Of a stretch of 64,000 nucleotides of DNA, positions 3,602 to 41,559 are shown piece after piece. The position numbers and the translations under genes are program-made. The stretch is from positions 14,446,001 through 14,510,000 of the forward strand of contig NW_026262637.1 in the NCBI RefSeq assembly GCF_021869535.1, in the 5' to 3' direction. The notes beneath the pieces are model-generated. The model was not told where the DNA came from. It saw nothing but the letters and a program-made list of their open reading frames with translations, and made no database searches. This stretch comes from Mytilus californianus (taxonomy: Eukaryota). Position 1 is the first letter of the stretch; the number at the start of each line of letters is the position of its first letter.

Positions 3602-4890
3602 ACTTACATTGACCGTTCAAGTGCGCTGAAATAAAATTAACTTTGACTCTAAATTATTTTGTCTATATCAGGCAACATTGAACTTGCACAGTTTTTACCG
3701 TTAGTAGGTTTTTTTTCCATTACAGCAGGGGTATAAATATCATAAATTGGTTAAAGGTTTTACCAGACAGTATCATAAAAGAGATTTTAATTTTATCTGC
3801 AGGAATTCACAAATGTCATATTTCGCATCAAGCTTTTGCGATCTTTAAGATATTTACAAAGTTTAGGAATTGCTCTTCAAATCTCTCCCATATGCCATAA
3901 AAACTAACTGGTATTGTAAATAGATTATAATGAATATACAATTGGTTGTTTTCAGTCTATGCATTTTTTGTATTATGGGGGATAATCAGAAATTCGCTAA
4001 TGACTTGTTTGAATCAATACTACTGGTTGTACTCTCTAACGTTTAATGGTTTTAAATTTCTAAAGTTTTGGTTCCGAGCGTACTTGATAAAACACGTGTT
4101 GTAAAGTCATAGTATTTATTTTGATATCAATATATTTTTTTTGAAATATAAAATTACAAAGCAGAACATGTGTGCCTTCTAAAAATGTGCTTAATGCTCA
4201 ATATGTAAACTACTCTTGAAATATGACGTTACAAGGTAAACCGATTTCATCAATATTACATTCACAGGAGCTTTTCTTCAGGGTGTAGTCGTCAATATAT
4301 AAAATCGCTTTTAGTATAAAGTCGGTGATGGTTTTTTTTCGTAACTGCATTGTGACCTTTAGACAAATATCTACAATTTCAGTAGGACATAACACGTTAA
4401 GAGTATCTCGGTTGAAAATAAACAAATATTGAGCAATGCATAAAACTTTTTACTTTAGAGAAAAACAACGCGAAAACATAAACATATAAGTTACGTCCCT
4501 CTTATGCTGATTAACTTAAGATATAATGGTATATACATCGTAGCAAAATATTAGAATAACTTAATATGTACACTTACATTGTAAACTTGTGTCAAAATAG
4601 ATGTGTATAGTATATACTATTATCTTTATTTGTTAAACACTCTTATTATAAATATATACACATATCTAAGATATATACACAAAACCCTAAGTTTATATAT
4701 CACAAATTTAACATACCAGAGCTAGACCTTTTGCCATAAATTGCTTTACAAAAGCGATTATAAAACTTGTATATTTATGAAGTCTTTAAAACTTGTTGAA
4801 GAGAGCTTGTATTTTTGTTTGGGGCATTTTTAATTTTTTATTTTAACTCATAATTATAATAATAAACAAGAATTCGTTGTATTTTCTGTT

Positions 4891-6132
4891 TTATTTACAT
4901 ACAAAGTCACTTGGTTTAAGGTCCGTCCATGTCTTTCCCGCGACATCGGGAGGCCCTGCACAGTCCGTAAGAGTAGGAGAGCCTACTTTGTAAGAAGCAT
5001 TGTCCATTTTCTCCCTCAGCCATCTTAAATGACAGTCACATGTCCATGGATTTCCGTAAATATAAACTGCTGATAGTTTCGGAATAAATGTTGTATCCAG
5101 TACAGCAGATTCTATAGTCATCAGTTTATTCTCACTAAGTCCAAGTTCTTGTAGATTTTTCAAAGGGTGCAAAGCTCCTGCTTCAATTTTAGAAACGTTA
5201 TTTATGTCTAATGACAAGCCTTGTAGTGACACTAAACCGTTAAATGTTAAATTTGTTATTGTACTTGACAAGTGTCCTTGAGTTAAATCTAAAAACCTTA
5301 GATTTTGTAATCCAAAAAACGCGTTGTCTTCAATAGAGTTAATAGTTCCCTGCGCTATTGCCAGGTTTGTTAGGTTCGACAATGATTTGAATGCATGTGA
5401 CGGTATAGTTGTTATCTTGTTACCATAGATACTTATTTTTTGTAAAGAACTTGGAAGATTTGATGTATCTGGTATTGCTTGTAGCTGATTATAATTTAAC
5501 CTCAATTCATTTAGCTTCACATTTTTGGAGAACGCTTTAGGTCTTAAACTGCTATCGTTAAGACTGTTTGAACTTAAGTCGATCACTCGAACATTAATCA
5601 ATGGATCAAAGGCATGCTTCTCGACTATATCAATTTGATTTGCTAGCATGTTAAGGTATTGTATGGACGTTGCATGTACGAAACTATTGGCCTTAAGTGT
5701 CGAAATAGGGTTGTTGTAGAAATTCAAAGTTAAAAGTTTTGGTGGAAGTTCCTGTGGAATTGAAGTAAATAGATTTGCTGACAAGTCTATCATGTCTATG
5801 CTTGACAAATTAAATGCTCCTCTTTCAATGCTATTATCTTGTAACTTATTTCTTGTCATGTCTATGTAACTAAGCTGGTAAAGTCCATCAAATGCGGTCT
5901 TTGGTATGTGAGAGATTTCGTTGGACCTAAGAAGCAATGCTATCGTATTTCTGGGTAAACCTTTTGGTATTTCTGTTATCCCTGTTAGGTTACACACAAC
6001 AGTTGTGTTATTGTATAAACACCAGCATGGTGAAGGACAAGGATCAGATAAGCTGTACTGTAGACACAGGAGAACTAAAATGACTGCAATTTGCTTCAAT
6101 ACTGTGTACATTCTTGTTTGTACTTTGGACAT
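4891..6132 (-). CDS. Paralogous secreted LRR protein (~413 aa; signal peptide, LRRNT, ~13 LRRs, LRRCT)
   Basis: Collinear with the 2384-3601 protein. An acceptor (ttgcag) just upstream of 6141 makes ATG 6132 (or 6111) the likely start rather than 6192. Confidence 0.9.
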   Translation of the reverse strand: MSKVQTRMYTVLKQIAVILVLLCLQYSLSDPCPSPCWCLYNNTTVVCNLTGITEIPKGLPRNTIALLLRSNEISHIPKTAFDGLYQLSYIDMTRNKLQDNSIERGAFNLSSIDMIDLSANLFTSIPQELPPKLLTLNFYNNPISTLKANSFVHATSIQYLNMLANQIDIVEKHAFDPLINVRVIDLSSNSLNDSSLRPKAFSKNVKLNELRLNYNQLQAIPDTSNLPSSLQKISIYGNKITTIPSHAFKSLSNLTNLAIAQGTINSIEDNAFFGLQNLRFLDLTQGHLSSTITNLTFNGLVSLQGLSLDINNVSKIEAGALHPLKNLQELGLSENKLMTIESAVLDTTFIPKLSAVYIYGNPWTCDCHLRWLREKMDNASYKVGSPTLTDCAGPPDVAGKTWTDLKPSDFVCK

Positions 6133-7218
6133 TTCAAGTATCTGCAACAGATTATAATAACATGAGAGAAAAAATGCTTTTACATTTGGCAATACTAGTT
6201 TTTATCAGTATCAGTGTATATGAAAATATATACTCCGATAAAGTACCCTTGGAAGCTGGCACTCTAATTTTCCATACGGACTTTGGGCATTGGTGCATCC
6301 TTAAAATGTCAAGCTGCAATATCTAAAAATATCTAATGACATGTTTAAAGCATCTATACCATACATTCATTTTTATAAATCGTCTTGATTCTAGACAAGT
6401 TGTGGAGAAATCTAAAGAGACCACCAAAGATGTGTCATCAAACACCAGATTATTTAAAGAATAAACTCATTACGATATACATAAGACAACGCGTTGATCA
6501 GATCTCCCACTTTTTATATTGTGGGTCAGCTAAAAAAGTTTATGGAATAGAAGACAATAAAAAGGTATCATTTGATTAATGCCAATCTTTAATTATGTCA
6601 GCGTTGCATAGATGCCTCAGTCTCTGTTCAGTGCCTTCTTGGTTTTGGGTGCTTTTATATTGTTATTTAAAAGGTATACTTATTATTATTATTATTTGAA
6701 AGGTAGATGTTTTGATTATTATCATTAAATATGTAGATTTTTTTGTTATTATCATTTTAAAGGTAGATTTGATGAGGTTGACATTTTCACTCCTTAGCTT
6801 GAAAAATCTGAAGCAACGCCGCATACACGAGTCAGGTCTTCTGGCGAAATATTCTAGGCAGTGAAAAATTAAAATAATGTATCAAAAATCCCGTCAATGT
6901 CAGTTAAAAGAAACTTGGCCTTCTGAATAGCCGTGTATTGCTTACTTCAAGAAAAAGGGGTCTTTCTGGGACTACAAGCGTATTCAATCAATTACAATGT
7001 ATGATTTCTATGTATATTTATACTTACGAGCCTTGTTTACACTTCTATTTCGTTTAATGTCTTATCTCTCTGAGTAGGTGCTTATCCCGTTATATTATAG
7101 ATAAAGTTCTTAATTTTACAACGTGAGATGAAGCATTTTAGATTTTGTTTTTGAACTTTAGTTGAAATCCATAGGAAGATTTAGGTGTGTTTTTGGAAGT
7201 ATGATACGCAAGAATATA

Positions 7219-9040: not shown

Positions 9041-12000
9041 ATGTTGCACGTAACAACAGAAATTGGAAGACCGGGAAAGAAAGGTAAAAATAATATTTAA
9101 TCAGCTGATCCAGTTGAATAATTTTCCTCCAGGTAAAAAGATAATTAACAAATAAGCTTCATTAAGAGTGGACATGGTTAACAAAACAAGGACGTAACAT
9201 CAGCTCTATTGAGCTTTTTACCGACATATCAGCCTCGGCGAGATGCGGATCCACGATTTTGAAAAAAGGGGGGGGGGGGGGGGGGGGGGGGCAAACTAGG
9301 CAACATTAGGAGTGTTAAAGAGTAAAAAGTCTACTCATTAACCATATATGTAGCTCCATAAGAGGGACATGGACCCCTTGCTCCCCTTAATCCACCTCTG
9401 TTATAGCAAGTGAGGGAAATTTCATATGAATTTGCTCAAATTTTTTAACATGTTGATTAAATTAGAAACCCGACATGGCTTAACATGGTTTTACATGAAA
9501 TTTGACACTAGTCGCATATTTCTGAGGGTATTTAGTTTTATGGGACAAACTTATCTGTTTTGGGATTCTGTGTTGGGATCTATTTTCTGACTTGGCCGCC
9601 AACTGAGTGAATCAGCAAATTGCTCCTGACAAGGATCTCAAGAAATATGGGCACAAACTCTTTTCAGATCCCACAATGTAACACGACAACAAGGAAAGAG
9701 TCATTCTACCCGAGGACCATCAGGAATTGGAATGCCTTACCCTCCTCAGTTACATCTGTCAGCAGCCTTGAATCGTTCAAGAGGCTCCTGACAAACTAAT
9801 AAATCAAAAGCCCTTGTTTTTAATCCCCACTGTTAAATATTTGTATAGCACCTTTTTTGTTTGTTACTTTAATCAAAATTATATTTGCGCACACCCAAAA
9901 GTGACAGAATAGTCAACATGATGACGGTGGTCACTAACTGGTAGAAGTAGAAGTAGAAGAATCTCAGTCAGGATTAATGTCAAACAACCTATTTTCACTA
10001 CAATTAGCTTCAAATTATCACCCAAAATATTATTATCATCATTCAACGAATTATTATTTTAGTAACTGTTTGTTTTAAAGGGGTAAACTATTTTTCGTTG
10101 ATGTTATTTCAAGCAAAACTAATGTTGTCACTCTTATCACATGGCAAATGGGGAACCCCAGTATTACCCTCATTTCTTGTCTAATATTACATTTAACATG
10201 TTTATGAGTAGAAAATTTTATTCAGAAAACACTGGATATAATAAAATTCAGAATGGAAATGGGGAATATGTCAAAGAGACAATAACCCGACCAAAGAGCA
10301 GAAAACAGCCGAAGGCCACCAATGAGTCTTCAACACAGCGAGAAAATCCCGCTGGCCCCTAAATAAAAATGTGTACTAGCTCAGTGAAAATGGACGTCAT
10401 ACTAAACTCCAAAACATATAAATGAACTAAAATTAAAAACACATACAAGACTAACAAGGGCCAGAGGGAAGGGATTGAATAAATAATGATATGTACATTG
10501 TATATAAATTATAATATATGTGAAGTTAACTGGTAATCACAAACAGTGGAAAAGATCTTAAAAATCTATTTTTTTATTGCAGAACGTGAAAAGCGACACT
10601 ATCCACAGCTACAGAATGTTTGTACTGATTATGGACCATATAAACCCAGAGGCAGACGATATATACCTCATGGATATGGATTCTACGATGAATGGACACC
10701 ACATAACCAGAACATACAAGTTCAATATTCAGAGTAAGTTATATCTTGCACCATGTAAGCAAACCAACAAAGTTACAAAAAGGCAATTAGGTTTTTTTAC
10801 TGCAGATTTTTTACACAATTTAAATGTGTATTTTACTACAGCATTTACATACATGTACAAGTACCATGTACAACATTTATAATAATATACATGTATATGG
10901 ATATCAAAGTCTTGTCTTAGAAGATACATGTAATCTGATCAGTGTTCTAGTCAGGATTTGAAAAGGGCAGGGTGCTAGTCAGAAAAAGGGCAATTTTACG
11001 TGTAAATGTCATTGAAAAAAGGGCAATTATTTAAGCCTCATAATTTATTAGCATACGTCATAAAATACATATGTACATAACATTACAAACAAAATACTCT
11101 ATATAACTCAGGCATTATTGTAAAATCAAGTTTCAGTTAAAATGGAGTAATAAAATTCAATACTTTTGGCACAATTTTCTGTTTGACTTTAAAAAACTTT
11201 GTTACAACATTGTCTAAAATTGAACAGAACATGTCATTATGACAGTTAATTTTGATATGTAGCAAGTTCTCAAGTGTTGATTGCTTGAGCCTATTTCTAT
11301 GATCACATTTGATCAGCTTTACTTGAGAAAACACTCTCTCAACCTCAGCTGTGCTCAGTGGCAAAACTGCTGCCACACTCATAAGTTTCAAAATTTTTAG
11401 ATAGAGCTCAGTCAATCCTAGTGTTTCATTCATGAGCACAGTTATGCACTTCTGGATTGATCTGAGCTCAGCTGAAGTGTCCCCAATAAAGGAAATGAAA
11501 GATGTCCATTCATGCATGTCATGGACAAGATTGTCACTGTCTATTTTAAAGTGGTCAGGCAGATCCATCATCTCAGTAAGACCATATGTGCAGGGAATTT
11601 CTTCAAACAAGGTCAGGTCAATATCTTTCATTTTTTTTTAATTTGGTGGAGTTTAGTTAAGCGACGTAAAACATTTCAAAATGATAAAAATAATTTCCAC
11701 TTACATAGTAAAGAATGATGTCAAAGTTTTATTTTCGCTAGCATTCTTTTTGGTTTCATCTTTCAGGCGTCTATCTCGAGTCGACATTGTGAAAATAATG
11801 ATTTAAAATTTATTTGGACTTAATTAAGTTCTCAGTTTAATTCTAATCACGAAATCGATCGATAGTCAAGGTTAACACTTTTTATGCAAATTTTTATGCT
11901 AATTAGTTATAGGTGGCACATTGCGCATTGTCAACAAGGAAGAAAAATGGCAACGAACATTTCGACAAAACTCATCCCAGAAAAAGCAAATTTCATAATA

Positions 12001-15000
12001 AAAACGACAGGGCACCCGAGAAACAGCAGAAAAAAGGCACGGGCGTCAATAAAAAAGGGCGGGCGCTGCGCCCTGTTCAAACTTTGTAGCTAGAACACTG
12101 CTGGTAATGTTTTGGACATCAGTAGTCTTGTCCTAGGAGAAACATGTAATCTGATAGTGTTTTGGACATCAGCAGTCTTGTCCTAGGAGATACATGTAAT
12201 CTGATAGTGTTTTGGACATCAGTAGTCTTGTCCTAGGAGATACATGTAATCTGATAGTGTTTTGGACATCAGTGGTCTTGTCCTAGGAGATACATGTAAT
12301 CTGATAGTGTTTTGGACATCAGTGGTCTTGTCCTAGGAGATACATGTAATCTGATAGTGTTTTGAACATCAGTAGTCTTGTCGTAGGAGATACATGTAAT
12401 CTGATAGTGTTTTGGACATCAGTAAACTACTGTACCTGTACATACATGTAGTATATTTATTTCAGACAGATTTTTTCCTTCATGGTCTTTTTTAATTTTC
12501 TGGTTCAAAACATCTTAATATAATGTACCTGTTACATCTGGATGATTAACCCTATGTTACTTGTACTTCAATAAAACTTAAAAAATAAAAATTTAACTAG
12601 CATCTTAATTTTTAATGTGGTCTTTTCAAATTGAAAAAGAATTCAATAATGTTAAACTTTTCATCTGATAATATTTTTATGATTATCTGATTAAAATTCC
12701 AGTTTCATTATACACACATTTTTTCATGAATTATTTAAATTAAATGCAGTTAGGAATAACATAAAACATGATAGCTAGGAAATGTATGTAAACAGATAGT
12801 GTTGCATACTATTTTATAAATTAATATTTAATAAAGGAATTGATACATGTCATGTATTGAAGTTCATTAAATTTGAATATGGAATAGCTAGTGTGTATAC
12901 TACACATGATTTCATGCTGTTGGCTTGTAAGTTATTGATTGCCAATAGAAAATAATCTTATGTTTTATTTATCACGAACAGAGCTGGTCCAGATTGGTCT
13001 TCCAAACTGAAGTATATAGATCATCCTCAGAACCCAAAATACCCAGCAGCAGAGATCTTCCCTGAGAACTGGAAAGCTATGAGGCCATACCCATGTAAGT
13101 ACTTAGTGGTCTTTTTGAACTGTAATGATTAAGCCAAGTGTGTGTAATTATTCAGCTTTGAGGGGTGAAGCTGCATATACATGTACTGTCTGTTTTGATT
13201 TTTGAAGGTTGTTGTTCTGATACATGTATATAACATGTTTAAATGAATAATTTACAATCAATGAATGGTATTTACTAATGATTCTGCAATGATTCTTATA
13301 TTGCATGTCAGTCAGTCAGCACTGTGTCAGTACAGGGTTCTCACTAGGAATTTTTCATGGTGAGTCCTGGGACTCATCACTTTTAGAAATGGTGAGTCCC
13401 AATAGATTTTGATGAGTCCAGGATGCATGTAATTTTTTGTGTCTTAATATAATGAAATATGACGAAATAAAACTAATACAATGCATGTTGGATTGGTAGC
13501 TTTTATTATATCAATAAAATTTATGATCTCTTTACTTAATAGTTATTGTTCATTACAACATATATGTAATAACAGACTTCTTTCTATGTCTATCAATTCT
13601 TGGTGTAGTGGATCATTGACTCTTGGTCTTTTACTTGGAACTGATGATTCAATGTCATCAGGTTTCCTTTTGAAGAAGGACTTTAACTTTGAACTTGACT
13701 GACTCATTGTGATACTGATGTCATTTTGTTAGACAAGCTAGTACCCAGTTAATTATTATTAATTAATTTTAATTATATTTGATAATTGAGTTACATGTAA
13801 TAATCATTTTGATGTTTGCATCATTATAATTATTATAGTCTTTAATAAAAACAAGCAAATCTAAAGTGAACACTGTTCATAATAATGAGTTTGGCTTTAA
13901 TCATTTTTTAATCCGATCTGTTTCAATTTCAATACATTTTTATACGACCGCAAAAAAATTTTGCGGTCGTATATTGGTATGACGTTGGCGTCGTCGTCGT
14001 CCGAAGACACATTGGTTTTCGCACTCTAACTTTAGTTTAAGTGAATGGATCTCTATGAAATTTTACCATAAGGTTCAATACCACAAAAGGAAGGTTGGGA
14101 TTGATTTTGGGGGTTATGGTACCAACAGTTAAGGAATTAGGGGCCAAAAAGGGGCCAAAAATAAGCATTTTTGTAACTTCCAGACATAACTTGTGTGTTA
14201 GTGTATGGATCTCTCTGACATTGTACCACAAGGTTCCATATCACACAGGGAATGCTGGGATTAATTTTGGGGGTAATTGCCTCAAAATATTAGGAATTAG
14301 GGGCCAAAAAAGGGGCAAAAAACATTTTTTTAGTTTCATGACAATAACTTGTGTGTAAGTGTATGGATCTTTCTGAAATTGTACTACAAGGTTCCATATC
14401 ACAAAGGGAAAGCTGGAATTGAGTTTGGGGGTAATTGCCTAAAACGTTTAGGAATAAGGGGCCAAAAAGGGGCCAAAAATAAGCATTTTTCTAGTTTCCA
14501 GACAATAACTTGTGTTCAAGTGTATGGATCTCTCTGAAATTGTACCACAAGGTTCCATATCACACAGGGAATGCTGGGATTGATTTTGGGGGTAATTGCC
14601 TCAAAATATTAGGAATTAGGGGCCCAAAAAGGGGCAAAAAACAAGCATTTTTCTAGTTTCAAGATAATAACTTGTGTGTAAGTGTATGGATCTTTTAAAT
14701 TGTACTACAAGGTTCCATATCACAAACGGAAAGCTGGAATTGAGTTTGGGGGTAATTGCCCAAAACGTTTAGGAATAAGGGGCAAAAAAGGGGCCAAAAA
14801 TAAGCATTTTTCTAGTTTCCAGACAATAACTTGTGTTCAAGTGTATGGATCTCTCTGAAATTGTACTGCAAGGTACCATACCACAAAGGGAAAGATGAAT
14901 CATAAGGGGGTTCAAAAAATTTGGGGGGGGGGGGGGGGGGTTTTTTCCTTTTTTTTTTCTTTTAAAATTTTCCATTTTAAGTTGGTTATTTCTGTTTTAT

Positions 15001-18000
15001 ATTTAAAAGCAAATAATAATGATATGGTAGGAGATACACACCAAACAGGATGTGTAAATTATTATAAAATAAGTATTGTGCAATAGCAAGAAATTTTCAA
15101 TTGCACAGTATTGCACAATAGCAAGAAATCTTCAATTGCACAGTATTGCGCAATAGCAAGAAATCTTCAATTGCACAGTATTGTGCAATAGCAAGAAATA
15201 TCCAATAGCACAATATTGCGCAATAGCAAGAAATTGTCAATTGTACAGTATTGCGCAATAGCAAGAAATATTCAATTGCACAGTATTGCGCAAAAGAAGA
15301 TACTTCGTATAAATTGCATATTTCTTGACCAATTTCAATGGGGTTTTATTCTTGAATTCTTGGGGTTCTTTAATATGCTGATTCTAACCGTGTATTAAGT
15401 TTTTGGATTTTGGGCCCCGTTTTTAAATTGGTCCACATTGAGGTCCAAAGGGTCCAAAATTTAACTTTGTTTGATTTCATCAAAAATTGAATTATTGGGG
15501 TTCTTTGATATGCCGAATCTAACCGTGTATTTAGACTCTTAATTTTTGGTTCTGTTTTCAAATTGGTCTACATTAAGGTCCAAAGGGTCCAAAATTAAAC
15601 TTAGTTTGATTTTAACAAAAATTTAATTCTTAGGGTTCTTTGATATGCTGAATCTAAACATGTATTTAAATTTTTGATTATGGGCCCAGTTTTCAAGTTT
15701 GTCCAAATCGGGGTCCAAAATTAAACTTTGTTTGATTTCAACAAAAATTGAATATATGGGGTTCTTTGATATGCTGAATCTAACCATGTATTTAGATTTT
15801 TGATTTTTGGGCCCCATTATCAACTTTGTCCACATTGAGGTCAAAAGGGTCCAAAATTAAACTTTGTTTGATTTCATCAAAAATTGAATTCTTGGGGTTC
15901 TTTGATATGCTGAATCTAACCATGTATTTAGATTTTGGATATTGGACCATAATAGTTGAATGTCCAATTTAAAATTTTTAAGTTCTTAGACCACATTCAT
16001 TCTGTGTCAGAAACCTATGCTGTGTCAAATATTTAATCACAATCCAAATTCAGAGCTGTATCAAGCTTGAATGTTGTGTCCATACTTGCCCCAACTGTTC
16101 AGGGTTCGACCTCTGCGGTCGTATCAAGCTGCGCCCTGCGGAGCATTTTATTCACCTTTGTTTACGATCGCGATGTTCAAAATGCACAATACGAGAAAAT
16201 GTTATTTGAAGACCAGTAAAATTATTTTTAACCGTAAAATTTTATATCTGCAGTGCTCTATTTTATGCATAGTAGCAACAGTTATGAAATATTATATCAT
16301 TTCATTTCAAATTCTCAAACAAAATTTACTTTTTTGTTTCAATCCATATGTACGTGATGTTCAACACGTGGAAATATTCACGCTTTTCAAATACTCGTAA
16401 AATTTTTAAAAATCAGTGACTATTTCATATTTATTAATTAGTTTGAACAGAATTATTATATTTAAGGATGAAATATGTTTAATTTTTAAAATAGTTATCA
16501 GTCAAGAAAAATATTGATCTACGCATCACATAAATTTTTCAACATAGACTACGGTTTAGTTTCGTGTCAAAACAATGTCGACAATCATGAATCTTCCAGG
16601 CAAACCGATGTGTTTGGGACTCAGGGGATACAATAAGGACGCGTCCCAGGGACTCACAGGTTTCCAAAATGATGCGTCTAGGACGCGTATACACGTCTTA
16701 ACGAGAACCCTGTCATTATGTCTATTAAATTCCATTATCTGTGCCATCTGCAAGCTGCAGTAAAGTGTACTGGTGCAAGATCAAGGATTCAGCAGAGAAT
16801 ATTATATCCTCAAACAGTAATAAGATTGAGTCTGTTGTTATGAACATGATTAACTACATGCAAGAGATCACTGTTAGCTATAGACAGCAACCAAACAACA
16901 CAAAGTAAACATATGTATGTGTAGATCTTTAGAATTTAGATTCATATTTATTGTACTAAGTACTGGGGATTCATTTTCTTCTTTGGGTACTGATTTTATT
17001 ATTTTCCTGGATTGTAGAAAATTGTCTTTTCACAGATATGTAATTTTATGGTTGCATCAGAAATCTGCAAACAAGCCATTAGACAATCTATTTAAATTCT
17101 TGGTTTACCTGTACCTATAAAATTGATCCCCAAGAATATCAATGAATCCACAGTACACATAAAATGTCTTGTTTACTAATGAATAAAAGGAGTGTGTCAA
17201 TGAGACAGCAACCTAAAAGCACAATAAACAAAAATACTTAGAGATCACCATACGGTCTTCATCAAGCTCTAAATTGCACAGGGTCTAAACAAGTTGTTGT
17301 ATATTACTACATATCTTATAGTTATAGCCGCTTCTCTGTTGATGTAATGAATGAATGATTCTGTTTATTTCAGTTACTTATAGGAGGTCAGATAATGAGT
17401 GGTTATTAGACCCTGGACTGTCCAATAAAGGAATGAAATGTACATTTAATGGTGTTCATAGAGCAACTGATACTTCTTCTGATGAAATAACACATAGAAT
17501 GTTATATGGAAGAGGCAGAAGGGGTAATTCTAATGGATAATGTAGCTTAAGTTGAAATTAAAGTTTGTTTGACACTCGAAAGGGGTAATATTGTTGAAAA
17601 ATTAAGCTGTACCAGGTTTGGATACATAGTAAAATATGCTAAAAAGATGTTATAAATTGTGAAAAAAATGGACCAAAACTGACTTACAACATATAATACA
17701 AATAATGATTAATTAAAGGTCATAACTTAGAAATTTTTAATGAAAATATTGTTTTAAAAGTAATATAACAACAATTTTTTGTGAAATTTATAGTATTTTG
17801 ACCTGATTATAAAAAAATCAAAATTGCTGTTTTAGTCATTTGTAATTAGAGAGAAAAAAAATATCAGACAACTTTTTATGATTGGAATGAGAATTTATGT
17901 TTTGAAAAAAATTGAATGTCTGAAAAACTTGAGTGATAATTTTTTTATGTACATTCTTTTACTACATGGTACTTAATATTTTAAAGGAAAGTATATCAGT

Positions 18001-21000
18001 AAAATACCAACTTCTTGGGAAAATATTTAAATCTTGTGTTTATTTTTTATTTACAGAAGTAACCATAGATAAGAGGAATGGTTTATCCTATGCCTCTGAG
18101 GGAGACAAGAATTATCAGGCTCCAGAATATAGTTCTGGCTTCCATAGAGTGGGATCTTCACTTCCACTCGCTCAGTTCGGGTAATTATTTATTGATATGT
18201 TTTATCCTAGTGTTATACAAGTATTTCCAAGTAAATTTTAAATTCAGAAGAAGATGATTCTTTTTGGTCTTAATGATGATTTCAATGTGGATAATAAACA
18301 AATCGGTGAAAACAATAAAATGTTTATGTTAAAAGAATTAATGTGTAAGAAGGGAGATAACTTGAATTATTCTATAAATTTTATTTTTGCAGCACTGTCA
18401 GGTAGTTACATTCTGTCAATTAACATACATTTGTTTGTGTCTGTGTGTTGTAACATAAGTAATCCCAGTTATTGTCCTTTTGTAGAACCAAAAAATGATA
18501 TATTTCCCTTGTCTAATGAAACCACAATATTATAAATGTCTAATGACATAAATTATAAAATAGGCACTTGGTCACCTCACTTAAAATCGGTTCAGTTAAT
18601 CAAATAAATTATCTCTTATTTAAAGCATAATTAAATTTTATTGAGAATGTTTTCAGTTCAAAATTCTTTGCTTAAACATTCATGGCAGTATTACTTAATT
18701 TTTTAACCCCAATATACAATGTATATTGCCAGTGGCTAAACCGATGACAAAAAACAATAGAAAATTCACTCTCCATATGATAAACTCTGAACGTCAATCC
18801 TACATTTGAAAGAATTATTTGTTAAACTCACTTTACAAGAAATATACATGCAAAGACACTATGTTTTATATAAAAATAAGTATGATTGCCAATGAGACAA
18901 CTATCCACCAAAGTTCAAATGAAGTGGATGTAAGCAATTATAAGCAACCATACAGCCTTCAACAATGAGAAAAACCCATACTGTATAGTCGGCTATAAAA
19001 GGTCCTGACAGGAAAAATATGAAACAATTCAATAGAGAAAACTAACGGCCTAATTTAAAACAAAACAATTTATGAAAAACAAATATGACAGACATGAACC
19101 AACGACAACCACTGAACTACAGGCTTGGGACAGACACATACAGAATGTGGCAGGGTTAAACTAGATTGCTGGGGCCAAACCCTCCCCCTAACCTGGGACA
19201 GTGGTGTAACAGTATAACATAAGAAAAAACTATAAAAATCAGTTGAAAAGGACTTAGCTCATCAGATCCATACAAAGCAGAAAACATCTACCGGTAACAA
19301 AAACACATCCCACAACAAAAAAGACACTGAGTAAAGACTGTTTTATTATTTATAGAGATAAATGCACTAAAAGCTTTAACTGAAATTTAAAAAATGTTAA
19401 TCTTTGCTGCATATTGATAAAAAAAAAATGGAAAAAATCCTGTATATATACAAAATCTAAAAATCTTTAAGGTAAAAAAATAATTTTGGAATGTTCCATA
19501 TAGTCCTAAGCATGTTACAATTTCCCAAAATATACCTATTTTTCACATCTTAAGTTTTCAAGTACACTGTTCTGCTCTTGTCACATGATCTTTCAATATA
19601 GAAATGTTGTCTTTTTATAAATATTACAATTTAGATATCAAGTCTGTGCAGGTTGAAAAATAGAAATAAATATTTTTTTTAAAGTAGGTTTTCCTTTTAA
19701 GGATTTTTACTATTTTTTATACATTTTTAAGTAAAGGTCGTCTTGATATCTGTGCATGTATTTGCGGTTTTCTCGATATTCACATTCAATGTTTACATCA
19801 GGATAAAGTTTGTTTGAATTTGCTTAGTAACTTTATTTCAAAATTGTTAATCTTTGCTGCATATCAGTCAATTCCTTTGAATTTTTTCCCTGAACTTCTC
19901 TGATCTAGCTGCATATATATACAGATATTTGGCATGTTCCAGAGAGGTATACAGCCAGTACAAAAATAAATTGAAGTCGGTACTCCAGGAATTTATTTGC
20001 ATAGCAACATTTTAAACCAGTTTTACATCAAGCTTCTATAGCCTGCTGTATTCTTCGTTTGTTATTAACAGAACGTTTTTTCTTGTGAATTTATAATTAA
20101 TAGCGTCCTTGCTAAAACGAGACAAACATCGAAAAGATCAAGAATTCTGTGTTCACAGGGGAGGTAATATTTTGTCACTAGATTTCCCACTTTTGCTATT
20201 TAGTACCCATATTTTAAAGGGTTTGAATTTGTGGCTTTTAACTGACAACCTCCTGCCCCTACAAAAAAGGGAAATTAACAAAAAGCATTTTTAGATCACC
20301 TGACCTAAATGGCCAGGCCTAAAAGGCCAAGTGATCTGTTCTCATCACTTGGCGTCTGTCGTCGATAACTTTTATAAAAATCTTCTCCTCTGAAAATACT
20401 GGGCCAAATTTAACCAAACTTGGTCAAATTCATCAGAAGGGTATCTAGTTTAAAAAATGTATCCCATGACTAGCCTGCCAACCAACATGGCTGGCATGGC
20501 TAAAAATAGAACATAGGGTAAAATGCATGTTTGGTCTATTATCTTGTAAACCCCTATGAATTGAGAAAATCTGTCGGAGCAAAAATGTTTAGAATGATGA
20601 GATCTGCATATTGGCTATTTACTTCAAAACTGTCAGACAATTTCTTAAAGGAGTTACAGCCCTTGAATGACGAATTTCACTGATTTGTTTTTTAAAGTTT
20701 GCCTTATATCTAAAAAACTATAACAGATAGAGAGAAACTGTATGTACCAAAAATGATCAACAAAACAAGATCTACAAATAAGTCCAATGGTCGAAATCGT
20801 CAGACGACTCCTTATTGGAGTTGATGCCCTTCAATTTTTTTTCGTTTTTGCCAAATATCTGAAAATTTGGAGTTAATGCCCTTTGATAATGATTTTTACT
20901 ATTTTTGCCTAATATTTGAAAAACTATAATAGATAGATAGAAATCTAAATTAGGAAAATGATCAGCAAGACTTGATCTACTAAAAAGTCAAATAGCTAAA

Positions 21001-24000
21001 TCATCTCTTTAATGACGATTTTTACCAATATTTTATGCTTTTGACTACTGTCTTGAAGACTATAAAAGATAGATAGACATTTTGAATAGCAAACACCTTG
21101 CAGAAATTGTTGGTTTACTCTTTATAGGAGTGATTGCCTTAATTGATATTTTCTTGCTGTTTTTTGTGTTTTGGGCAAAAACCAAAGAAAATAGAAACTG
21201 TAAACAGAAAAAATGATAGCAATTCAAGATCAACAAAAAGAGATTTTTGTCATGAATTCTATTCTAGTCCACAATGCTAGAGAGAGTCCATTGTTGAAGA
21301 TGCTCATAGACCTAGGTGAGCGACACAGGCTCTTTTGAGCCTCTAGTTTTATTCTGTAAAGAATTAAGCATGTGAAAAAGTACTTTTATTTTAAATAAAC
21401 AAATCAATTATCATGCATCAATTTTCCATTCTCTGGAAAATAATATAAAAAAACTTATGTCTAATCTCACTTTCTTATTAAAACATGAGAATGACAACAC
21501 ATTACATTGATGTAGGCAACAATATAAATAGAATATAAAAATCTGATATGATTGACTTTGTAGTATATGTAGGTGGAAAACACCATGGCCATTTATTATT
21601 CACATCCATGACTAGTAAGTTCCTGTAGAGATCTACATTTATAGGAAGAAGGATAATCTATAAATAATTTAGTTAGACTTTTATGATTTATGGAATGTTT
21701 TTTGGAGATATGTTAATTTCTTAAATTCAATTTTATTAATATGTTCTTTTTTCTTTCTTTTTGGGGATTTAGATACATGTATTTTGTAATTTACAGATTT
21801 CCCTTTTGAATTTATTACTGATAATTGAACTTATTTTATATTAGATATTAGATTTGAATTAAAATGAAGTTAATAGATACTAATTAATTAGGTCTAATGA
21901 TAACTACAATAACAACATCAATATTATATGTATTTATAATATCTGTAAAAGATAAATTGTGTTTGCAATCTCAGTTTTGCTTCTGAAATTATTTAAACCG
22001 TCCCATCAATTAATTAATGCTTCACAGTATTAAAAATTAATAAATGTTTACAATTATTGAAAATCGTTTCATTAATTTTATTTGAAAACAAAATGTTATT
22101 ATGAATAAATAAAAGAAATGACAAGAATAGTCTACATTTAAGTGGATTCCAAACACTGGTCCCTTTGTAGAACATACATTTGTTTTATCCTTATGTTGAA
22201 TGTTATAAATGTATTAATACCAGTTGTATTTCAGTCTCCTTTTGGTATACCAGGAATTTGTTGACACCTGAATTGTTAAATTATTGAAGACAAGTAACAC
22301 AAAAATATATGGGATGTACAACAATGTAGCTTGTATCTGTATTAGAATAGAAATGCTGTACATCAATCTGTTTCTTTTAATGATCCAAGTGCACTGTGCT
22401 CTTTGTATTTAGAAGAAACCTTTTCAAAAGCATTTTTATTATCAGAAAGATATTAGCAATTTTGTTTATTTACTTTACTCAATGAAATGTGTGACTACTT
22501 TTGTGAAAAATGATAAATTCCTGGTTTACCAAACAACAAAACCATTCCTAATTTAACCTTGAGTATGTGTTTAATATTGCTTACCATGTGTTGTGTGTTT
22601 GTTGCAGTGCTAATTTTGGCAAAAAACAAGTAGATACATTCGTACCCCTCCAGCCTTTACCATCTGTCAAAAGGTACCATATCTTTCTTATTAGCATGAA
22701 TTTGTAGTATAATCTTTTAGCATGCACATTTCCTCTTTCACATGTTATACTTTGTTTTATTTTTATTGTTACTCTTTACTGCATGTGCCATTCATATACA
22801 TTGATTTATGTCAGCTGTATATTTCTTGAAGCCTCTGGGGTTTTCAAAACTGGTGGCAATTTGAATACTGCATTTTCTTACTTTCCTATGCTCATTTATG
22901 AAAAAAATACTTTTAAATCTTGGTGAATGTAACACATATATTTTCAGCTTACTTTTGACTTAATTAACTTCTTACTTCTGTTTGAAAACCTTGGTTCTTC
23001 AGTGTATTATTCTAGCATGATCAACAACTGCATGGTTAATAGAAGTTTACAGTATATAAATTGTGATTTAGATACACATTTTTATTGGTGGTGTATGGTG
23101 ATTGATTATTTTGTACAAAAGTACTTTTATTTGTGACCGTATGATGTACCTCTATTTGAATACAGAACAGGAGGCAAAGATCTCAGAAAAATAGTACAGT
23201 TTTTTAGGATCATGCATGGTCAGTTTTGTTAAATTTCTATTATTGTAGCCCATTGTTACCATCTGTACTGAGAATGCTGAGGTACTAGGACAGTGCAGAG
23301 CATTATGTCGGCATGAAATTTCTACTATTCTTTGTTATATATCACCACCAACAGTAATTTTAACTGAATCACCATTTATGTACTTAATGGTATTAGTTAA
23401 TCATATTATAATCAAATGCAAATATAAGAATTTATTTATATTACAACAATTCAAGTTAAATTAAGATATAAATGTTACATGTAATAGTCATGATTTTTAG
23501 TTTGATTTCAATGTAGATAGAATTGAAAAAAACTTTTATTCAACACTTTAGTCTAACTTATTCAAATTATTTTACACTTCAAACTTGGGTCTTTATTATC
23601 TGAAGTTTTAGTTAACATATCTAAACATTGCAGGATTACTGCCAAATTATATAAATATACATGTTAGCAAAATTGTTTTTTATAAATTATGTGGTTAGCT
23701 TTCCCGTTTGAATTGTTTCACATTCTTCATGTCTGGGCCTTTTATAGCTGATTATATGGTATGGGTTTTTCTCATTGTTGAAGTCCCTACAGTGGCCAAT
23801 AATTGCTTACATCTACTTCATTTGAACTCTGGTGGATAATTGTCTTATTGGCAATCATACCTCATCTCATTATTTTTATATTAATATGATTTAAAGCTTG
23901 CTATATGGAAAAGACACTTGTTTATTGTTAAAGATTACCTTTTTTACTGCAGATGTTGTATTTTGGGGCTTTCTATTGTGTTGTTAGGTTTGTGTTGATG

Positions 24001-27867: not shown

Positions 27868-28537
27868 TATAGATGACATACTGAATATTCCTATATCTAT
27901 CAAATTGATGAAAATTGCAGGAATAAATGATTCTCTGTTTTAGAAAAATGAGTGGATATTTCTTTAACTTACATAGGTCACTAAAGTTCTTCAGATTGTT
28001 TCTATTTAACGATTATATTTAAATATTTCTAATTATCTATGACAATGTATTTACAGAATGTATCTGATTGCTTATTATCATAATGCTTCAATCATTTTAT
28101 TCTTTATTAAAATTTTAAGAAAATCAAAAAATTCTTGTTTTAAATAAAAAATAGGACTGGGATGGCAATTAGATAAGTTGAAATATCTAAGCATTAACCA
28201 GAAATGTATGTCTGTAATTTTTTAGAGTTGGATTTATTAGTCTGTGATAGATATGGCTGGTTATCATATATATATGAAAATAATAAGAGGTGGTATCATT
28301 GCCAATGAGACAACTCTCTACCAGAGACCAAATGATGTAGAAGGTTAGCAACTTATGGTCACAGCCTTCAACAATGAGCAATATAGTGTATAAGAATATA
28401 TTTGATTTAAGCCTGATTCATGTTAAATCACAATAGTAAAATTTCTAAACCAATCTATCCCCTTATAGTTAAGAAATCTTTGCATTATGGGATGTTAACA
28501 ATTCTCTTATTTAGAAAAATCTGAATCATTACAATGA

Positions 28538-29352
28538 TTTATTGTCTCGCCTTGACGGAGTCAAAAAGCGAGACATAGGTATGCAGTTTCCGGCAGCTGC
28601 GGTGGCGTCAACAATGTTAGGTCTAGTTTATGGTGAACCACAAGTGGTAGGTCAATGATTTTTGGTATGCAGTTGTATTAGCATTGCCACATGTCATTTC
28701 CATGGAGATTATTTACCCCTGCCCCCTCAGTCATGGTCTATTGACTTTGAAACTTTTGCTTAGTTTACATGTATTAGTTTGTGATTAGGTCAGTTTATGG
28801 GGAACCACTAGTGGTAGGTCAATGATATTTGGTATGCAGTTGTATAAGCATTGGCATATCTTATTTCCATGGAGATTATTTGGCTCCGCCTCCTCAGTCA
28901 TGGTTTATTGACTTCGAAAATTTTGCTTAGTTTACATGTATTAGTTTGTGATTAGATCAGTTTAAAATGAACTGCTAATGTTAAGTCAATGATATTTGGT
29001 ATGCAAATTTCATGGCACTTGCAAGTATTGTTTCCATGGAGATTATATAGCCCCACCCCCTCATTGGATCATTTCATTGACTTTGAAACTTTTACATAGT
29101 TTACAAGTTAATGTTTGTGTTTAGGTTAGTTTAAAGGGAACAACTTATAATTAGTCAATGGTATTTGGTATGCAGTTGTATTAGCATTGGCACATCTCAT
29201 TTCCATGGAGATTGTTTAGCCATGTACCTTCAGTCATAGTTCATTGACTTTGAAAATTGCATAACTTACATGTTCAAGTATTGCTATTTTAATTTCAACA
29301 TTTGCATAATTAAAATTACAAAAAGGCGAGACATATCTCTGTGATAACAGTT
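28538..29352 (+). mobile_element. HINE-like element with internal ~140-180-bp diverged tandem repeats
   Basis: 5' TTTATTGTCTCGCC...GCGAGACA hairpin; 3' AGGCGAGACA subTIR plus a short terminal hairpin. Confidence 0.75.
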
Positions 29353-30779: not shown

Positions 30780-32474
30780 TCAGTTTTGAACATGGTAAAC
30801 ATATACACACTCCCCTCCATTACTAGTTAGTACCAGCTCATTTGTTCTGTTGTTGAAATTTACATGAGAAACACTCGCTATTCCATCCTTTTCTGTCAGG
30901 ACAGTATTTCGTTCGCCAAATCGTAGTTTATATAGTGTATTTGTTATAGGCTCACACACGTAAACACCACCAGACGCATCGCTTGCAATGCGACAGTTGT
31001 TCCTAACGTCGCCGTTTTTGTAATATACCGTGTTTTCCCCAGTAACTGATACTTCTGAGATTTCTTTCCGGTCTTTGTGAGTGCAGATGAACGAATCGCA
31101 GCGAAAATTGATACACATATCACTTATATCAGTTTTTAAAGGGATCGATTTTAATATTTCACCATCAAAGTTTATTGAACAAATATAAGCGGAGTCTTCT
31201 CCTTTGATACAACACTGAATACACACCCATATCTGGAAGCCTCTTCCAAATATAAATGAACATTCGCTATTTTGACTTGTGTCTTTTCCAACAAGACTTT
31301 CAATGCATGGTCGAATATATTTCCTGTCTGTTGTAATTGATTGCACATCAACCACAACTATAGGTAGTTTGTTCTTACACGTTACTAAAACACGTGATTT
31401 CTCAAATGAACACAACTGGTTTGGTTCCTCGGGTAGTGATATTGAAACTCGTCCAGTCTTCCCAGATTTGATATCGAAAATGCTAAGTTTGTATTTTGAA
31501 TCCCATTTTGATTCTGTTAGAACGATTCGATTGTCTTCAGTAAAGCAACATGCACCAAATATGAACCCTTTAGTAGGCGTTAGCGTCTGTATTTTGGTTG
31601 CTGATATGAATTCTGTAGATATTTTGCCATGGATATGCAATTGTTTTTCGTTTAACAAGGAATGATCGGTATATCCTGTTTCTTCTAACGATGAGATTAA
31701 ATCGGTCAATTTCCTTGCAAAATTTGCTGGTATCATGTTAAGTTGAATTGATTCAAGTTCTTGCTTTGTTTTTACAATATCTTTTTCGTTTGCATCCTGT
31801 ATTGTTCTGAGGTGTTGTAACATTAGGAAGAAATGTGTTTGATTAGTAATGTAATTAAGGTGATCTGCAGTTTCAATATTTGAATCTAAATCACTTTGTA
31901 ATGTTTTTAACTTGTTCTCAATTTCTGATATTTTGTGATTCTGTTGGCTAAATCTGCATAATACACCTTTTTCTATTTGATCCAACTTTCCATTAACTAA
32001 CTCACGAATTTTCAAAATTTCATTTAGGACTGAGATCTTCTGTTGCTGCAATTGTTCAGAACGATTTGATATTTTGATTACGACATCCTTTGCGTGTATG
32101 TTCAATTGTGTCAACCTTTCTTGTAAACCTTTTAAATCAGATCCATCTTTTCGTTCCTCTGAAGCATTTTCTATGGATTGTACATTTTTACATTTACTGT
32201 GATTTTCAGAAATACACATCTGACATAAAACCTGATCATGGCACTCACAGAATGCCTTTAATGCTTGACCGGCATGTCGATGGCATAACTTTGAAACAGT
32301 TCTGTCCATCATTGAAATTTTCTGGATGTCATTGACTTTATGAGGAGTTGAAAATTTTCTGTGGACTTTCCCACATGGTTCGCATAATGCTTCTAAACAA
32401 TCATAGCACCATAAATTTGCCTTGTTCCTCTCATTGTCTCTAAGACAAGCCGCGCAATTCTCTGACTCTGGCAT
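30780..32474 (-). CDS. RING-less TRIM-like protein: B-box1, B-box2, coiled coil, C-terminal NHL-like beta-propeller (564 aa, single coding exon)
   Basis: CAAC...CYDC...CEPCGKVH...H (B-box1) and CHRH...CECHDQVLCQMC...HSKC (B-box2), then a heptad-rich middle and a beta-strand-rich C-terminus. An acceptor lies 2 nt before the ATG and a candidate 5'UTR donor at ~32820. Confidence 0.85.
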   Translation of the reverse strand: MPESENCAACLRDNERNKANLWCYDCLEALCEPCGKVHRKFSTPHKVNDIQKISMMDRTVSKLCHRHAGQALKAFCECHDQVLCQMCISENHSKCKNVQSIENASEERKDGSDLKGLQERLTQLNIHAKDVVIKISNRSEQLQQQKISVLNEILKIRELVNGKLDQIEKGVLCRFSQQNHKISEIENKLKTLQSDLDSNIETADHLNYITNQTHFFLMLQHLRTIQDANEKDIVKTKQELESIQLNMIPANFARKLTDLISSLEETGYTDHSLLNEKQLHIHGKISTEFISATKIQTLTPTKGFIFGACCFTEDNRIVLTESKWDSKYKLSIFDIKSGKTGRVSISLPEEPNQLCSFEKSRVLVTCKNKLPIVVVDVQSITTDRKYIRPCIESLVGKDTSQNSECSFIFGRGFQIWVCIQCCIKGEDSAYICSINFDGEILKSIPLKTDISDMCINFRCDSFICTHKDRKEISEVSVTGENTVYYKNGDVRNNCRIASDASGGVYVCEPITNTLYKLRFGERNTVLTEKDGIASVSHVNFNNRTNELVLTSNGGECVYVYHVQN

Positions 32475-33996
32475 ATCTGAAATGAATTTCGATGTGATTA
32501 ACTAATAAAAAATTTAGTAGTTCAATGAGTATTCCTCGACTGATCAAAATATTCAACACAAAAAAAGGTTTGTATTATTAAACAGTGCATATGTTTACAT
32601 AGAGATAAATATATAATGATTTATTACAACCATTGTCATATAACACAGTGATTTTTCATAACTGTGGCTTTTTTCTGTTAACAATACAGGAATATATATG
32701 ATATATAAAATATTTGTCGTACTAACCACACATTCGATCATATTTTTGCGTCTAAAAAAGATGTTCAGAAATGTCACAGGTTCATCATGATACACAGTTA
32801 TAGCAATTATAATTACTTACCTTCTACGGAGATCCTGCAATTAGTTCAGTCTAATATTCCAGGTATTCAGATATCAGTCCAGTACTGTGCTAAGTTAATT
32901 ACCTATATGTTTGTATTTACATGTAACACGATAGAAAATTGTATTTTAATTGTACAGTGACGTCAATATAAGGAGATTTCAAATGTAGATATATAAAATG
33001 TATAATAGTATACAAATAGGGTATTTATAATTTACACACCTGAACAATATTTCATTTTTATGTAAATAAGGGTTAATAGCTAGCCATAATCAATCCTTAG
33101 ATATTAAATATCGTTTGAGACGTAGTACAAGTTGGACGTTGGTTCTTGTGATATTATGTAAATCATTTTATTGTTCTTTGCTCAAATCATGACGCAAATG
33201 AAATATAGATTACATTATACGATTAATACCACCATGGTCACGTGTTACCTGGTTATCTTAGTCCATTTTTTTAAATGATTTATCATTTGATATAGTAAAC
33301 GAAGTTAGAAAGTAAATCAAAAGTATTAAAACAAACAACGTAAGCCAAATGTGATTGTGATTAGATTAGGCTGGAGATATACAGCGCCATAATTTTTAAT
33401 TTCCTTAATAATTTTTTATTTATTATCTTTGCTTATTTTGACAGGAAAAATTCAAAAGGAGTACATGATGTTATATTTTAACTATATGTATGTTAGGGCT
33501 TTGCACTCAGGGGATGAAGACGTTTATGATAGTACGTAGAACGTTTTTGACTGCGTTTTGTGTACCAGTAGTAAAAACCTCAGAGATTTGGGAATCTTGA
33601 ATTATAAAAAAATCATAAATCATTCATTCAATGGAAATTTTAAACATACAAGTTACAAATGTGATATATGTACAGAACTTATTTAGCGAAAACAGAGTAA
33701 AATTGTAAGTGCAGAATGATATCTATATTGATGGACTGCTGTCTTATTGACGTTTACCCTGCCTGTACAATTTATTATCATGGCTTTCGGTATAGTTAAA
33801 AAGGCTATCCCATTAGTTACTGCATAATCTGTAGTCCGAGCTACAAGTATTTGTGAGACAAGTTGTAGTCTTATGCTCTGTTTTCCTAACTTTGTGAAAT
33901 TTATTAAAATTAATTCCTTCGCAACTTGGGTCAATTAATGTGTATCCAATTTTTAATAAATCTTTTCACTTTTCCCCGTGATTTGTTGCTCCCATA

Positions 33997-34130
33997 TAAA
34001 AATAAGGAGATGTGGTATGATTGCCAATGAGACAACTATCCACCGAAGTTCAAATAAAGTGGATGTAAGCAATTATAGGCAACAGTACGGCCTTCAACAA
34101 TGAGAAAAACCCAAACCGTATAGTCGGCTA
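33997..34130 (+). repeat. Truncated copy of the TGATTGCCAATGAGACAACT repeat family
   Basis: Near-identical to 18876-19000. Confidence 0.75.
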
Positions 34131-34144
34131 TGTTTGTTACCTAA

Positions 34145-34292: not shown

Positions 34293-34617
34293 AACATAGA
34301 CATATCGTCAATCAATATAATATTTCCATGGTTTAACTGAACTGTTGTAAAATCAAGGAGTCTTTTTTAACCTTTACCTTTTAGTCCCTTTGATGAAAGC
34401 TTATATAAACTATATAGCTTTTTTAGCTAGCCATAAAACCAGGTTCAACCCATCATTTTCCTCAGGAAAATGCCCATACCAAGTCTGGAACATGACAGTT
34501 GTTTTTCACTCGTTCCGTTCGTTGGTTGATAACGTTGCATTTTGTCAGTTTTTATTGAATTCCTTTTTTTGAATTTACACTGCAGTTCGGTATTTTTGTT
34601 ATACTTTTATAAAAAAA

Positions 34618-34873: not shown

Positions 34874-34904
34874 TTGTTGTTGGTGTAGCAACACAGCATG
34901 AAAC

Positions 34905-36395: not shown

Positions 36396-36403
36396 ATACA
36401 CTT

Positions 36404-41498: not shown

Positions 41499-41559
41499 TT
41501 TATTTAGTTACAAACATTGCAGCTGCACAATTTCAAGTCAGCAGAAAATGAAAAAAACA

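Follow-up and report, generated by a model that had tools for sequence, protein, structure and literature searches.

The 64,000-nucleotide (nt) stretch analysed here, referred to as the window, comprises positions 14,446,001 to 14,510,000 of contig NW_026262637.1 in the Mytilus californianus assembly GCF_021869535.1. It is repeat-rich DNA with ~32% G+C and no N, and its repeats are found again in contigs of marine metagenomes and are similar to repeats of bivalve assemblies. On the minus strand lies a repeat unit, termed copy A, with a decayed RNA domain that resembles the twister ribozyme (helices P1 to P5, pseudoknots T1 and T2) in the permuted form open at P5; shorter copies (B to H) of related repeats lie further along the window. 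We consider it probable that this domain, at 19106-19207, is a dead copy of an RNA domain from the 3' tails, or pseudo-long terminal repeats (pseudo-LTRs), of Naiad elements, a clade of Penelope-like elements (PLEs), and that the intact domain is a P5-open twister. The positions of all features are collected in the table.

Copy A belongs to a repeat family without an open reading frame (ORF), called family A, and shares 73-82% identity with metagenome copies across 250-420 nt (blastn). Its 5' end corresponds to the tail-to-head junction of the metagenome loci L025 and L028, and it ends at the common 3' end, at ~18867. A previous sequence-only reading had described the domain on the minus strand of 19120-19195, and its letters were found as stated on 19207-19106. 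The 5' segments are CAGG (19195-19192), UU, A-GGGG (GGGG at 19188-19185), GA (19184-19183) and GGG (19182-19180); these are followed by a 21-nt spacer (19179-19159), UAA (19158-19156), CCCU (19155-19152) and GC, and then by the hairpin CACAU-UCUGU-AUGUG (19149-19135), UCUG (19134-19131), UCCCAAG(C) as the loop (19130-19123) and CCUG (19123-19120). All of these segments lie within an outer helix, CCACUG/CAGUGG, formed by 19204-19199 and 19114-19109. P5, P2, GA, the T1 partner, UAA, the T2 partner, P3, the P4 5' strand and the loop are retained. The claimed deletion of the P4 3' strand is borne out by the alignment (A2), in which the seven columns holding TCAGGAG in six family copies are missing from copy A, and both palindromes that occupy the P1 region of the family are decayed or lost. 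Since this deletion removes the P4 3' strand and both palindromes have decayed, copy A is a mutationally dead fossil and the locus itself is without function; cleavage at U/AA is predicted for the intact relatives and not for copy A.

The head of copy A also contains the conserved string CUGAUGAG, which lies ~75 nt upstream of the twister and in the same place in L025, L027, L028 and L035. It may be of the 'HHR_half_core' type listed by PMC8557442 for the 3' untranslated regions (UTRs) of Naiads. A hammerhead reading of the string was ruled out, as it is without GAAA, without helix II and without an Rfam match.

Table. Features of the window and positions of the motif and of reverse transcriptase (RT) ORFs in related loci
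Sequence	Feature	Position	Strand	Description
Window	Copy A	18867-19335	-	complete ORF-less family-A unit, ~470 nt: head, decayed twister, ~240-nt tail
Window	Decayed P5-open twister-like domain	19106-19207	-	from sequence reading, alignment and covariance model
Window	U/AA, homologous to the twister cleavage site	19157-19158	-	from alignment to the twister architecture
Window	CUGAUGAG, half of a hammerhead core	19255-19262	-	family-A head; no GAAA partner
Window	Copy B	23670-23884	+	tail only, 5'-truncated
Window	Copy C	33994-34131	-	tail only
Window	Copy D	34630-34904	-	5'-truncated family-A copy; model 20.1 bits at 34820-34904
Window	Copy E	28293-28381	-	tail end only
Window	Copy F	35468-35791	-	twister 3' half and tail, L046 lineage; model 33 bits at 35706-35791
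Window	Copy G	41792-41855	-	3' half and tail start; model 24.8 bits
Window	Copy H	34436-34560	+	G subfamily; model 9.5 bits, E 0.36 at 34436-34497
Window	RT remnant (GIPMGTNCAP..., RYLDDI)	36072-36401	-	same strand as copy F, ~270 nt upstream of it
Window	Two intact ORFs, leucine-rich-repeat (LRR) proteins	2384-3601, 4891-6192	-	LRR_8, LRRNT
Window	564-aa ORF	30780-32474	-	weak B-box zinc-finger matches below Pfam cut-off
Window	hAT transposase remnant	11137-11631	-	ORF with hAT dimerisation domain
Window	Satellite-like tandem arrays	12051-12500, 14027-14900, 15037-15316, 15352-15950, 28625-29294, 52604-53214, 55566-56033		
Window	Recent segmental duplicates, 92-98% identity	37367-38387 and 40448-41503		3.1 kb apart
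Window	Recent segmental duplicates, 92-98% identity	38538-39014 and 46003-46481		7.5 kb apart
L035	Intact motif	1794-1884		
L046	RT ORF end; intact motif; tail end	1286; 2099-2186; ~2425		
L047	RT ORF; intact motif	13275-14900; 15174-15272		Pinctada imbricata
L048	RT ORF; intact motif	3433-5520; 5808-5911		
L049	RT ORF; intact motif	1501-2967; 3258-3359		
L051	RT ORF; intact motif	1501-2946; 737-833 and 3093-3189		one motif either side of the RT ORF
L052	RT ORF; motif	1501-2865; 3157-3256		
L054, L055	Motif present			
L058	RT ORF; intact motif	1915-3372; 3647-3741		

The repeat copies, read in sense orientation, have one common 3' end, ...UUGGCAAUCAUACCACAUCUUCUU, followed by T-rich or TATA sequence, and their 5' ends vary, as expected from reverse transcription that ends prematurely. 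A covariance model that held only P2, P3 and P4 was run over the window and related contigs; in the 64 kb it found exactly four partial copies and nothing else. These are copies D, F, G and H, all of which had been noticed in the sequence-only reading, with the correction that the one at ~34440-34490 (copy H) is on the plus strand. Their twister likeness extends to the 3' half only, since none keeps the 5' half (P2 3' strand, GA, T1 partner), and all four are non-functional fragments. Copy D begins within the second palindrome and retains UAA, the P2 5' strand, GCC, P3, a decayed P4 and then the tail. Copy F has UAA, ACCC, GC, a P3 of UGCAA/UUGCA and a P4 of CCUG/CAGG closing the loop UCCUAAAU, and copy G has UAA, UCCA, CC/AC, P3 and the same P4 closing UACCAAGU. 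Copy H consists of the palindrome remnants GCUAGC and AACCAGGUU, the latter identical to the second palindrome of L054, followed by CAA, P3, a P4 of CCCA/CUGG with the loop UACCAAGU and the start of the tail, and it lacks the GAGGG half.

Two readings of these copies were rejected. The string GGGAAGGA upstream of copy F, considered as T1 covariation, is outside the homology with L046; this homology begins only ~5 nt before UAA, and the string therefore has no homology with the 5' half of the twister. The model alignment made copies G and H look like a subfamily with a 37-position deletion; this was judged artefactual, since AGGUU in both corresponds to the second palindrome, as it does in L054. 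The string CCTGTCCCAAGTCAGG, allowing up to three mismatches, occurs four times in the window (0.10 expected), and one of the four matches (19187-19202) is the P5/linker stretch of copy A and contains no P4 loop. Several truncated copies start, and the deletion in copy F has its breakpoint, within about 0-12 nt upstream of UAA (34881, 35791 and 41855 in the window, ~773 in L030 and ~2675 in L025); a second group starts within the P4 loop or close to it, the whole sample being too small for a judgement.

When metagenome contigs were scanned with an 18-base string located beside the motif, more than 12 family copies were recovered, each damaged somewhere. The majority sequence of family A restores the P4 hairpin CCUG-UCCCAAGU-CAGG and the P1 region GGGAUCCC + AACAUGUU (alignment A2). 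The intact P5-open architecture, with P5, P2, GA, T1, U/AA, T2, P3 and a P4 closing the UCCNAAGU loop, was read directly in the relatives. The proposed order of the fold is P5, a short junction, the P2 3' strand, GA, the T1 partner, the P1 region, U/AA, the P2 5' strand and the T2 partner, followed by the P3 hairpin and the P4 hairpin, whose UCCNAAGU loop would form both pseudoknots. Among these copies the helices keep pairing while their sequences change: P5 is GCGG/CCGC, CGG/CCG, CCGG/CCGG, CAGG/CCUG or CAGAU/AUCUG; P2 is GUGG/CCAC, GGGG/CCCC or GGGC/GCCC; and P4 is CCUG/CAGG, GCCG/CGGC or ACCG/CGGU. T1 pairs GGG with CCC or AGG with CCU, and T2 pairs AC or GC with GU, or CC with GG. The P3 stems are unrelated sequences of 3 to 12 bp that all pair, as the sequence-only reading had noted.

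The quantitative estimation of pairing in 14 copies aligned by MAFFT gave 89.6% of cells paired, compared with 25-46% when the partners were slid by 1-3 columns. The covariation score was 0.374 vs 0.204 for shuffled alignments and was reached by 0 of 500 shuffles, a control that overstates significance because the copies are relatives, and with P3 added, changes on both sides were observed at nine pairs. The covariance model retrieved 11 more copies outside its seed, eight of them in a single Pinctada locus. With decayed copies included, the 25 copies showed 85.1% of cells paired (30-40% when slid) and 12 pairs changing on both sides, T1 and T2 pairs among them, a count reached by 5 of 500 shuffles. 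It should be added that alignment A4 was fitted to the nested helices P2, P3 and P4, and that the L046 row is one column out of register in alignment A3, an error that makes the P2 and T2 counts lower, not higher.

The two pseudoknots were not part of the search model. T1, between three bases of the P4 loop and the three bases after GA, was paired in 84-95% of cases (84% on the 25 copies, with the first pair AU in nine, GC in six and GU in four), and T2, between the two bases after P2 and the last two loop bases, in 88-93% (88% on the 25 copies; AU 14, GU 6, CG 1, GC 1). The T2 covariation proposed earlier, GC/GU vs AC/GU, was seen. P2 was 81-82% paired, and one of its pairs occurs both as UA and as GC. 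U/AA followed by P2, and GA after the P2 3' strand, are present in copy A and in all intact relatives; a P4 closing the conserved 8-nt loop is 89-91% paired in the relatives and absent from copy A. The sequence-only reading had named beforehand a CCU loop not matched by AGG as the result that would speak against it, and the intact copies with a CCU loop (L046, L048, L049, L051 and L052) carry GAAGG. Unconstrained energy folding of L048 and L047 returned P5, P2, P3 and P4. Further, a scan of viral contigs showed that the P4 hairpin string is shared with phage contigs, in which the flanks, judged by eye, form a full P1-type twister layout; the repeat itself was not among these matches. The likeness to a P5-open twister is therefore not a matter of chance, in agreement with the earlier claim, since compensatory changes occur in P2, P3, P4, T1 and T2 across lineages.

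The link to Penelope-like elements came from copy F and its relatives. The RT remnant upstream of copy F is 86% identical to L046 655-869, and copy F is 83% identical to L046 2132-2427, with ~900 nt deleted between the two relative to L046. Because the RT and the twister half with its tail align as two blocks, copy F is a deleted copy of an L046-type coding element. A HMMER search with the RT remnant returned hundreds of bivalve fragments, including Pinctada imbricata proteins named reverse-transcriptase domain proteins. In the related loci the motif lies 150-820 nt downstream of the RT ORF end, so that a conserved twister-type fold is located in the 3' UTR or pseudo-LTR of these elements, ~240 nt before the 3' end.

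Naiads were described by Craig et al. (2021; PMC8557442) as having a GIY-YIG domain, a KR-rich stretch, CxC, GxKF/Y, DKG changed to DKA, and a C-terminal RT. The translation of L056 505-1767 contains the N-terminal YVGET..R..H half of GIY-YIG, a KR-rich stretch, CDC, GPKYR and ADKA, and the L048 protein contains CSC, GPKYR and ADKA; in both, the RT ORF is next. Pfam searches of the RT fragments and upstream ORFs gave a weak RVT_1 match and no GIY-YIG match; the assignment to Naiad therefore rests on the motif reading and the description in PMC8557442. These features are found in the related loci and, through its RT remnant, in copy F, and not in copy A, which has no ORF. Insertions typical of Naiads, with a motif before and after the ORF (L051), tail-to-head junctions (L025, L028), 5' truncation and T-rich or TATA ends, were also observed. 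The sequence-only reading had suggested Penelope-dependent elements; the Penelope link was right, and the F/L046 lineage and its relatives are 3' UTR tails of the Naiads themselves. The ORF-less units of family A are best explained as derivatives of Naiad tails.

Several minor observations concern these elements. An in-frame TGA directly follows DKA in L048 (4042-4044), L054 (~1995), L055 (~1268) and L056 (1765-1767); it is probably a selenocysteine codon, fitting the selenoprotein Naiads of clams. It lies between the N-terminal and RT parts, where gene callers split or misread the Naiad ORF. A match resembling a selenocysteine insertion sequence was found at L035 1535-1597 (+), at 25.9 bits (below the gathering threshold of 35), ~200 nt upstream of the motif on the same strand. 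Further RT remnants (e.g., RRDDFNF, from the RT C-terminal region) occur in the window at 36629-36943 (-), upstream of the remnant linked to copy F, and at 47119-47720 (+), an inverted partner 10 kb away, which suggests nested or inverted Naiad insertions. The repeat-tail string was found in none of the viral contigs and, among genome contigs, in one contig of a bacterial bin (L045). The bacterial-bin contigs with the bivalve repeat or a Naiad ORF, L045 from a Saprospiraceae metagenome-assembled genome (MAG) and L053 from a Thiodiazotropha MAG, appear to be host DNA that contaminates symbiont or environmental bins.

The P1 region departs from the twister pattern. In nine lineages two palindromes, 3-4 nt apart, stand in place of P1, the second ending at or beside the U of U/AA. 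The 21-nt spacer of copy A, which had been taken for a weak P1, is instead a decayed version of two such palindromes, neither of which remains there, and an ordinary cis P1 hairpin (5 bp) exists only in L046. The pairs are GGGAUCCC + AAACCGGUUU, GGGUACCC + AAACCGGUUU, GGGCCC + AACCGGUU, GUGCGCAC + AUCCAGGAU, CAGUGCACUG + AUCCGGAU, UUGAGAUCUCAA + AAACAUGUUU, CGGGCCCG + AACCAGGUU, UGGAUCCA + AAACGCGUUU and GGGAUCCC + AACAUGUU, and palindromy outlives symmetric changes (AU to UA; loss of two central bases). Single cases are modest, being matched by 12-36 of 1000 base shuffles, whereas the recurrence of palindromes with different sequences across lineages is not modest. As palindromes of 8-10 bases cannot fold on themselves, the pairing of two copies is their natural reading.

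Building on the established sequence, family membership, covarying fold and link to the Naiad ORF, the following mechanism can be proposed. In element transcripts the fold would cut between U and AA. Transcripts that run across two tails (pseudo-LTR, ORF, pseudo-LTR, or ORF-less head-to-tail units) would release one permuted unit with a 5'-OH and a 2',3'-cyclic phosphate, an end chemistry that would permit ligation into a circle; the role would be that suggested for hammerheads in other PLEs. The palindromes at the P1 site would probably let two copies pair, which is the least certain part. Catalysis, dimer action and biological role of the intact copies are thus predictions from sequence.

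Several results weigh against an active Naiad twister. Rfam in gathering mode gave no match in the whole window; in E-value mode copy A gave only a 3'-half twister-P1 alignment (14.5 bits, E 9.7; gathering 67.2), L035 gave twister at 12.1 bits, below gathering, L048, the best copy, gave no twister match at E up to 10, and six metagenome loci with family-A copies gave none at E up to 1. No Rfam twister model thus reached its threshold on any of the sequences searched. In addition, the A-rich junction before P2, which is UAAA in the consensus of Rfam, is only UUA, AAUA or GUAA, P2 may consume the G of GA in L027 and L035b (four G, not five), most lineages lack a cis P1 helix, and no attached ORF was found for family A. 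The relatedness of the copies and the fitting of alignment A4, both mentioned above, count on the same side, as do the energies of RNAcofold dimers, which at -13 to -14.5 kcal/mol are not distinctive from shuffles (-9 to -10 +/- 3.4). Twister activity in high-throughput assays was insensitive to P1 defects and P1 was found dispensable (PMC11662667). Given these data and dimer energies within the range of shuffles, cis cleavage without P1 is as possible as cleavage by paired copies. The stricter proposal that the Naiad twister is active only as two copies paired through the palindromes, with circles serving as rolling templates and family A as the first twister-based retrozyme, is one that we regard as unlikely; if it were true, only two-tail transcripts, or two RNAs, would be cut, which would explain the partial-tandem insertions of Naiads.

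The main rival, to which we give a distinctly low probability, is a conserved non-catalytic signal for RT template recognition at the 3' UTR, dimerisation or packaging, whose twister likeness would be due to ancestry or convergence. It would account for the failing Rfam models, the replacement of P1 by palindromes and the reduced A-rich junction, and also for the position ~240 nt before the 3' end, where a cut in a single unit would remove the tail presumably needed for priming. However, the positions kept are those required for twister catalysis and tertiary folding (GA, U/AA, compensated T1 and T2), protein-binding hairpins need no two pseudoknots onto one loop, and the tested twisters do without P1, as noted. 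A chance likeness in a SINE-like (short interspersed element) or tRNA-derived repeat is hardly credible: the Rfam scores are at chance level and GGTTTAACCC resembles a B box and TAGTTCAGTGG an A box, but these strings are wrongly spaced, 8 nt apart, ARAGORN finds no tRNA-like gene in the window, the covariation across lineages includes pseudoknots, and the motif is contiguous with RT ORFs. A tRNA-derived SINE head was rejected on the ARAGORN result and the box spacing. A further reading refines the Naiad-tail explanation and does not exclude it, namely that family A is an independent non-autonomous twister retrozyme whose ORF-less, ~455-nt head-to-tail units would be cut to unit length by the twister, made circular and copied by the enzymes of Naiads. 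The junction ...CAUAC | UCAAAUGUACCUUUGUUG... is common to copy A, L025 and L028, ~130 nt without an ORF separate junction and twister, copy A begins with a remnant of a preceding tail end, and animal retrozymes have been argued to be non-autonomous derivatives of PLEs (bioRxiv 10.64898/2026.07.22.740005). Against this, the support comes from three loci, and a short redundancy at the ends of the autonomous element could also produce the junction; we put the proposal forward tentatively, with the balance against it.

Concerning known systems, the type P5 permutation of twister was reportedly described by Roth and co-workers in 2014. The Naiad motif is like the Rfam family Twister type P5 (RF02684, clan CL00120) in the order of elements, U/AA, P2, GA with the T1 partner, the T2 partner after P2, an optional P3, a P4 closing the UCCNAAGY loop and P5 as the open helix; it differs in scoring below Rfam thresholds, in its palindromes for P1 in most lineages and in a shorter, less A-rich junction. 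Hammerheads, including minimal ones that cleave as dimers, are reported from the pseudo-LTRs of PLEs (Cervera and de la Pena 2014; Lunse et al. 2017; PMC8557442). The Naiad motif shares with these hammerheads the character of a small motif of self-cleaving type in a terminal repeat or 3' region, flanking the ORF on either side in L051 and with hints of copy pairing, and differs as another ribozyme class.

Twister variants were reported at the 5' end of the RTE retrotransposon Perere-3 of Schistosoma mansoni (PMC8501958), and truncated twisters at RTE 5' ends are mentioned in PMC7761336. In Perere-3, too, the twister-class motif is integral to a retrotransposon, which is LINE-like (long interspersed element), carries the motif at the 5' end and completes P1 by the target-site duplication, whereas the Naiad motif is P5-open and lies in the 3' UTR ~240 nt before the end. 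Type-P1 twisters were predicted in many taxa, bivalves included, by a 2024 survey (PMC11662667). The animal non-LTR retrozymes (PMC7229834) resemble family A as short ORF-less units related to PLE tails, with head-to-tail junctions and one motif per unit; they differ in having type I hammerheads and documented circular RNAs. Family A has no hammerhead, only the CUGAUGAG half-core, and its ORF-less head-to-tail junctions were found at three loci. The retrozyme-like character suggested earlier is possible only for the ORF-less family-A unit.

According to PMC8557442, Naiads are a PLE clade proliferating without canonical hammerheads and with half-cores only, in their 3' UTRs, and this was read as indicating that a ribozyme is not required; the word twister does not occur in that paper. 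The sequence-only reading had not recognised a described element class; the class is in fact described in that paper, and the twister is not. No paper linking twister and Naiad was found in the literature searched, the coverage of which was incomplete, so that a prior description is possible. The family trait would be a variant form of two known kinds, the twister ribozyme and the ribozyme-bearing Penelope-like element. Naiads rank among the commonest retroelements of bivalves. If the Naiad twister is real, it would restore the rule that endonuclease-bearing PLEs carry self-cleaving RNA, with one ribozyme class swapped for another in the same job, would add tens of thousands of eukaryotic twisters missed by current Rfam models, and would present a natural case of P1 replaced by palindromes. 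For annotation, it gives an identity to an 'unknown' repeat that is very common in mussel-like genomes.

The remaining features of the window (Table) include ORFs that are likely host genes (the two LRR ORFs) and a 564-aa ORF that may represent either a TRIM-like host gene or a single-exon retrocopy. The tandem arrays have units of 50, 160, 35, 135, 167 and 160 nt, and an inverted counterpart of the 167-nt array lies at a distance of 26 kb.

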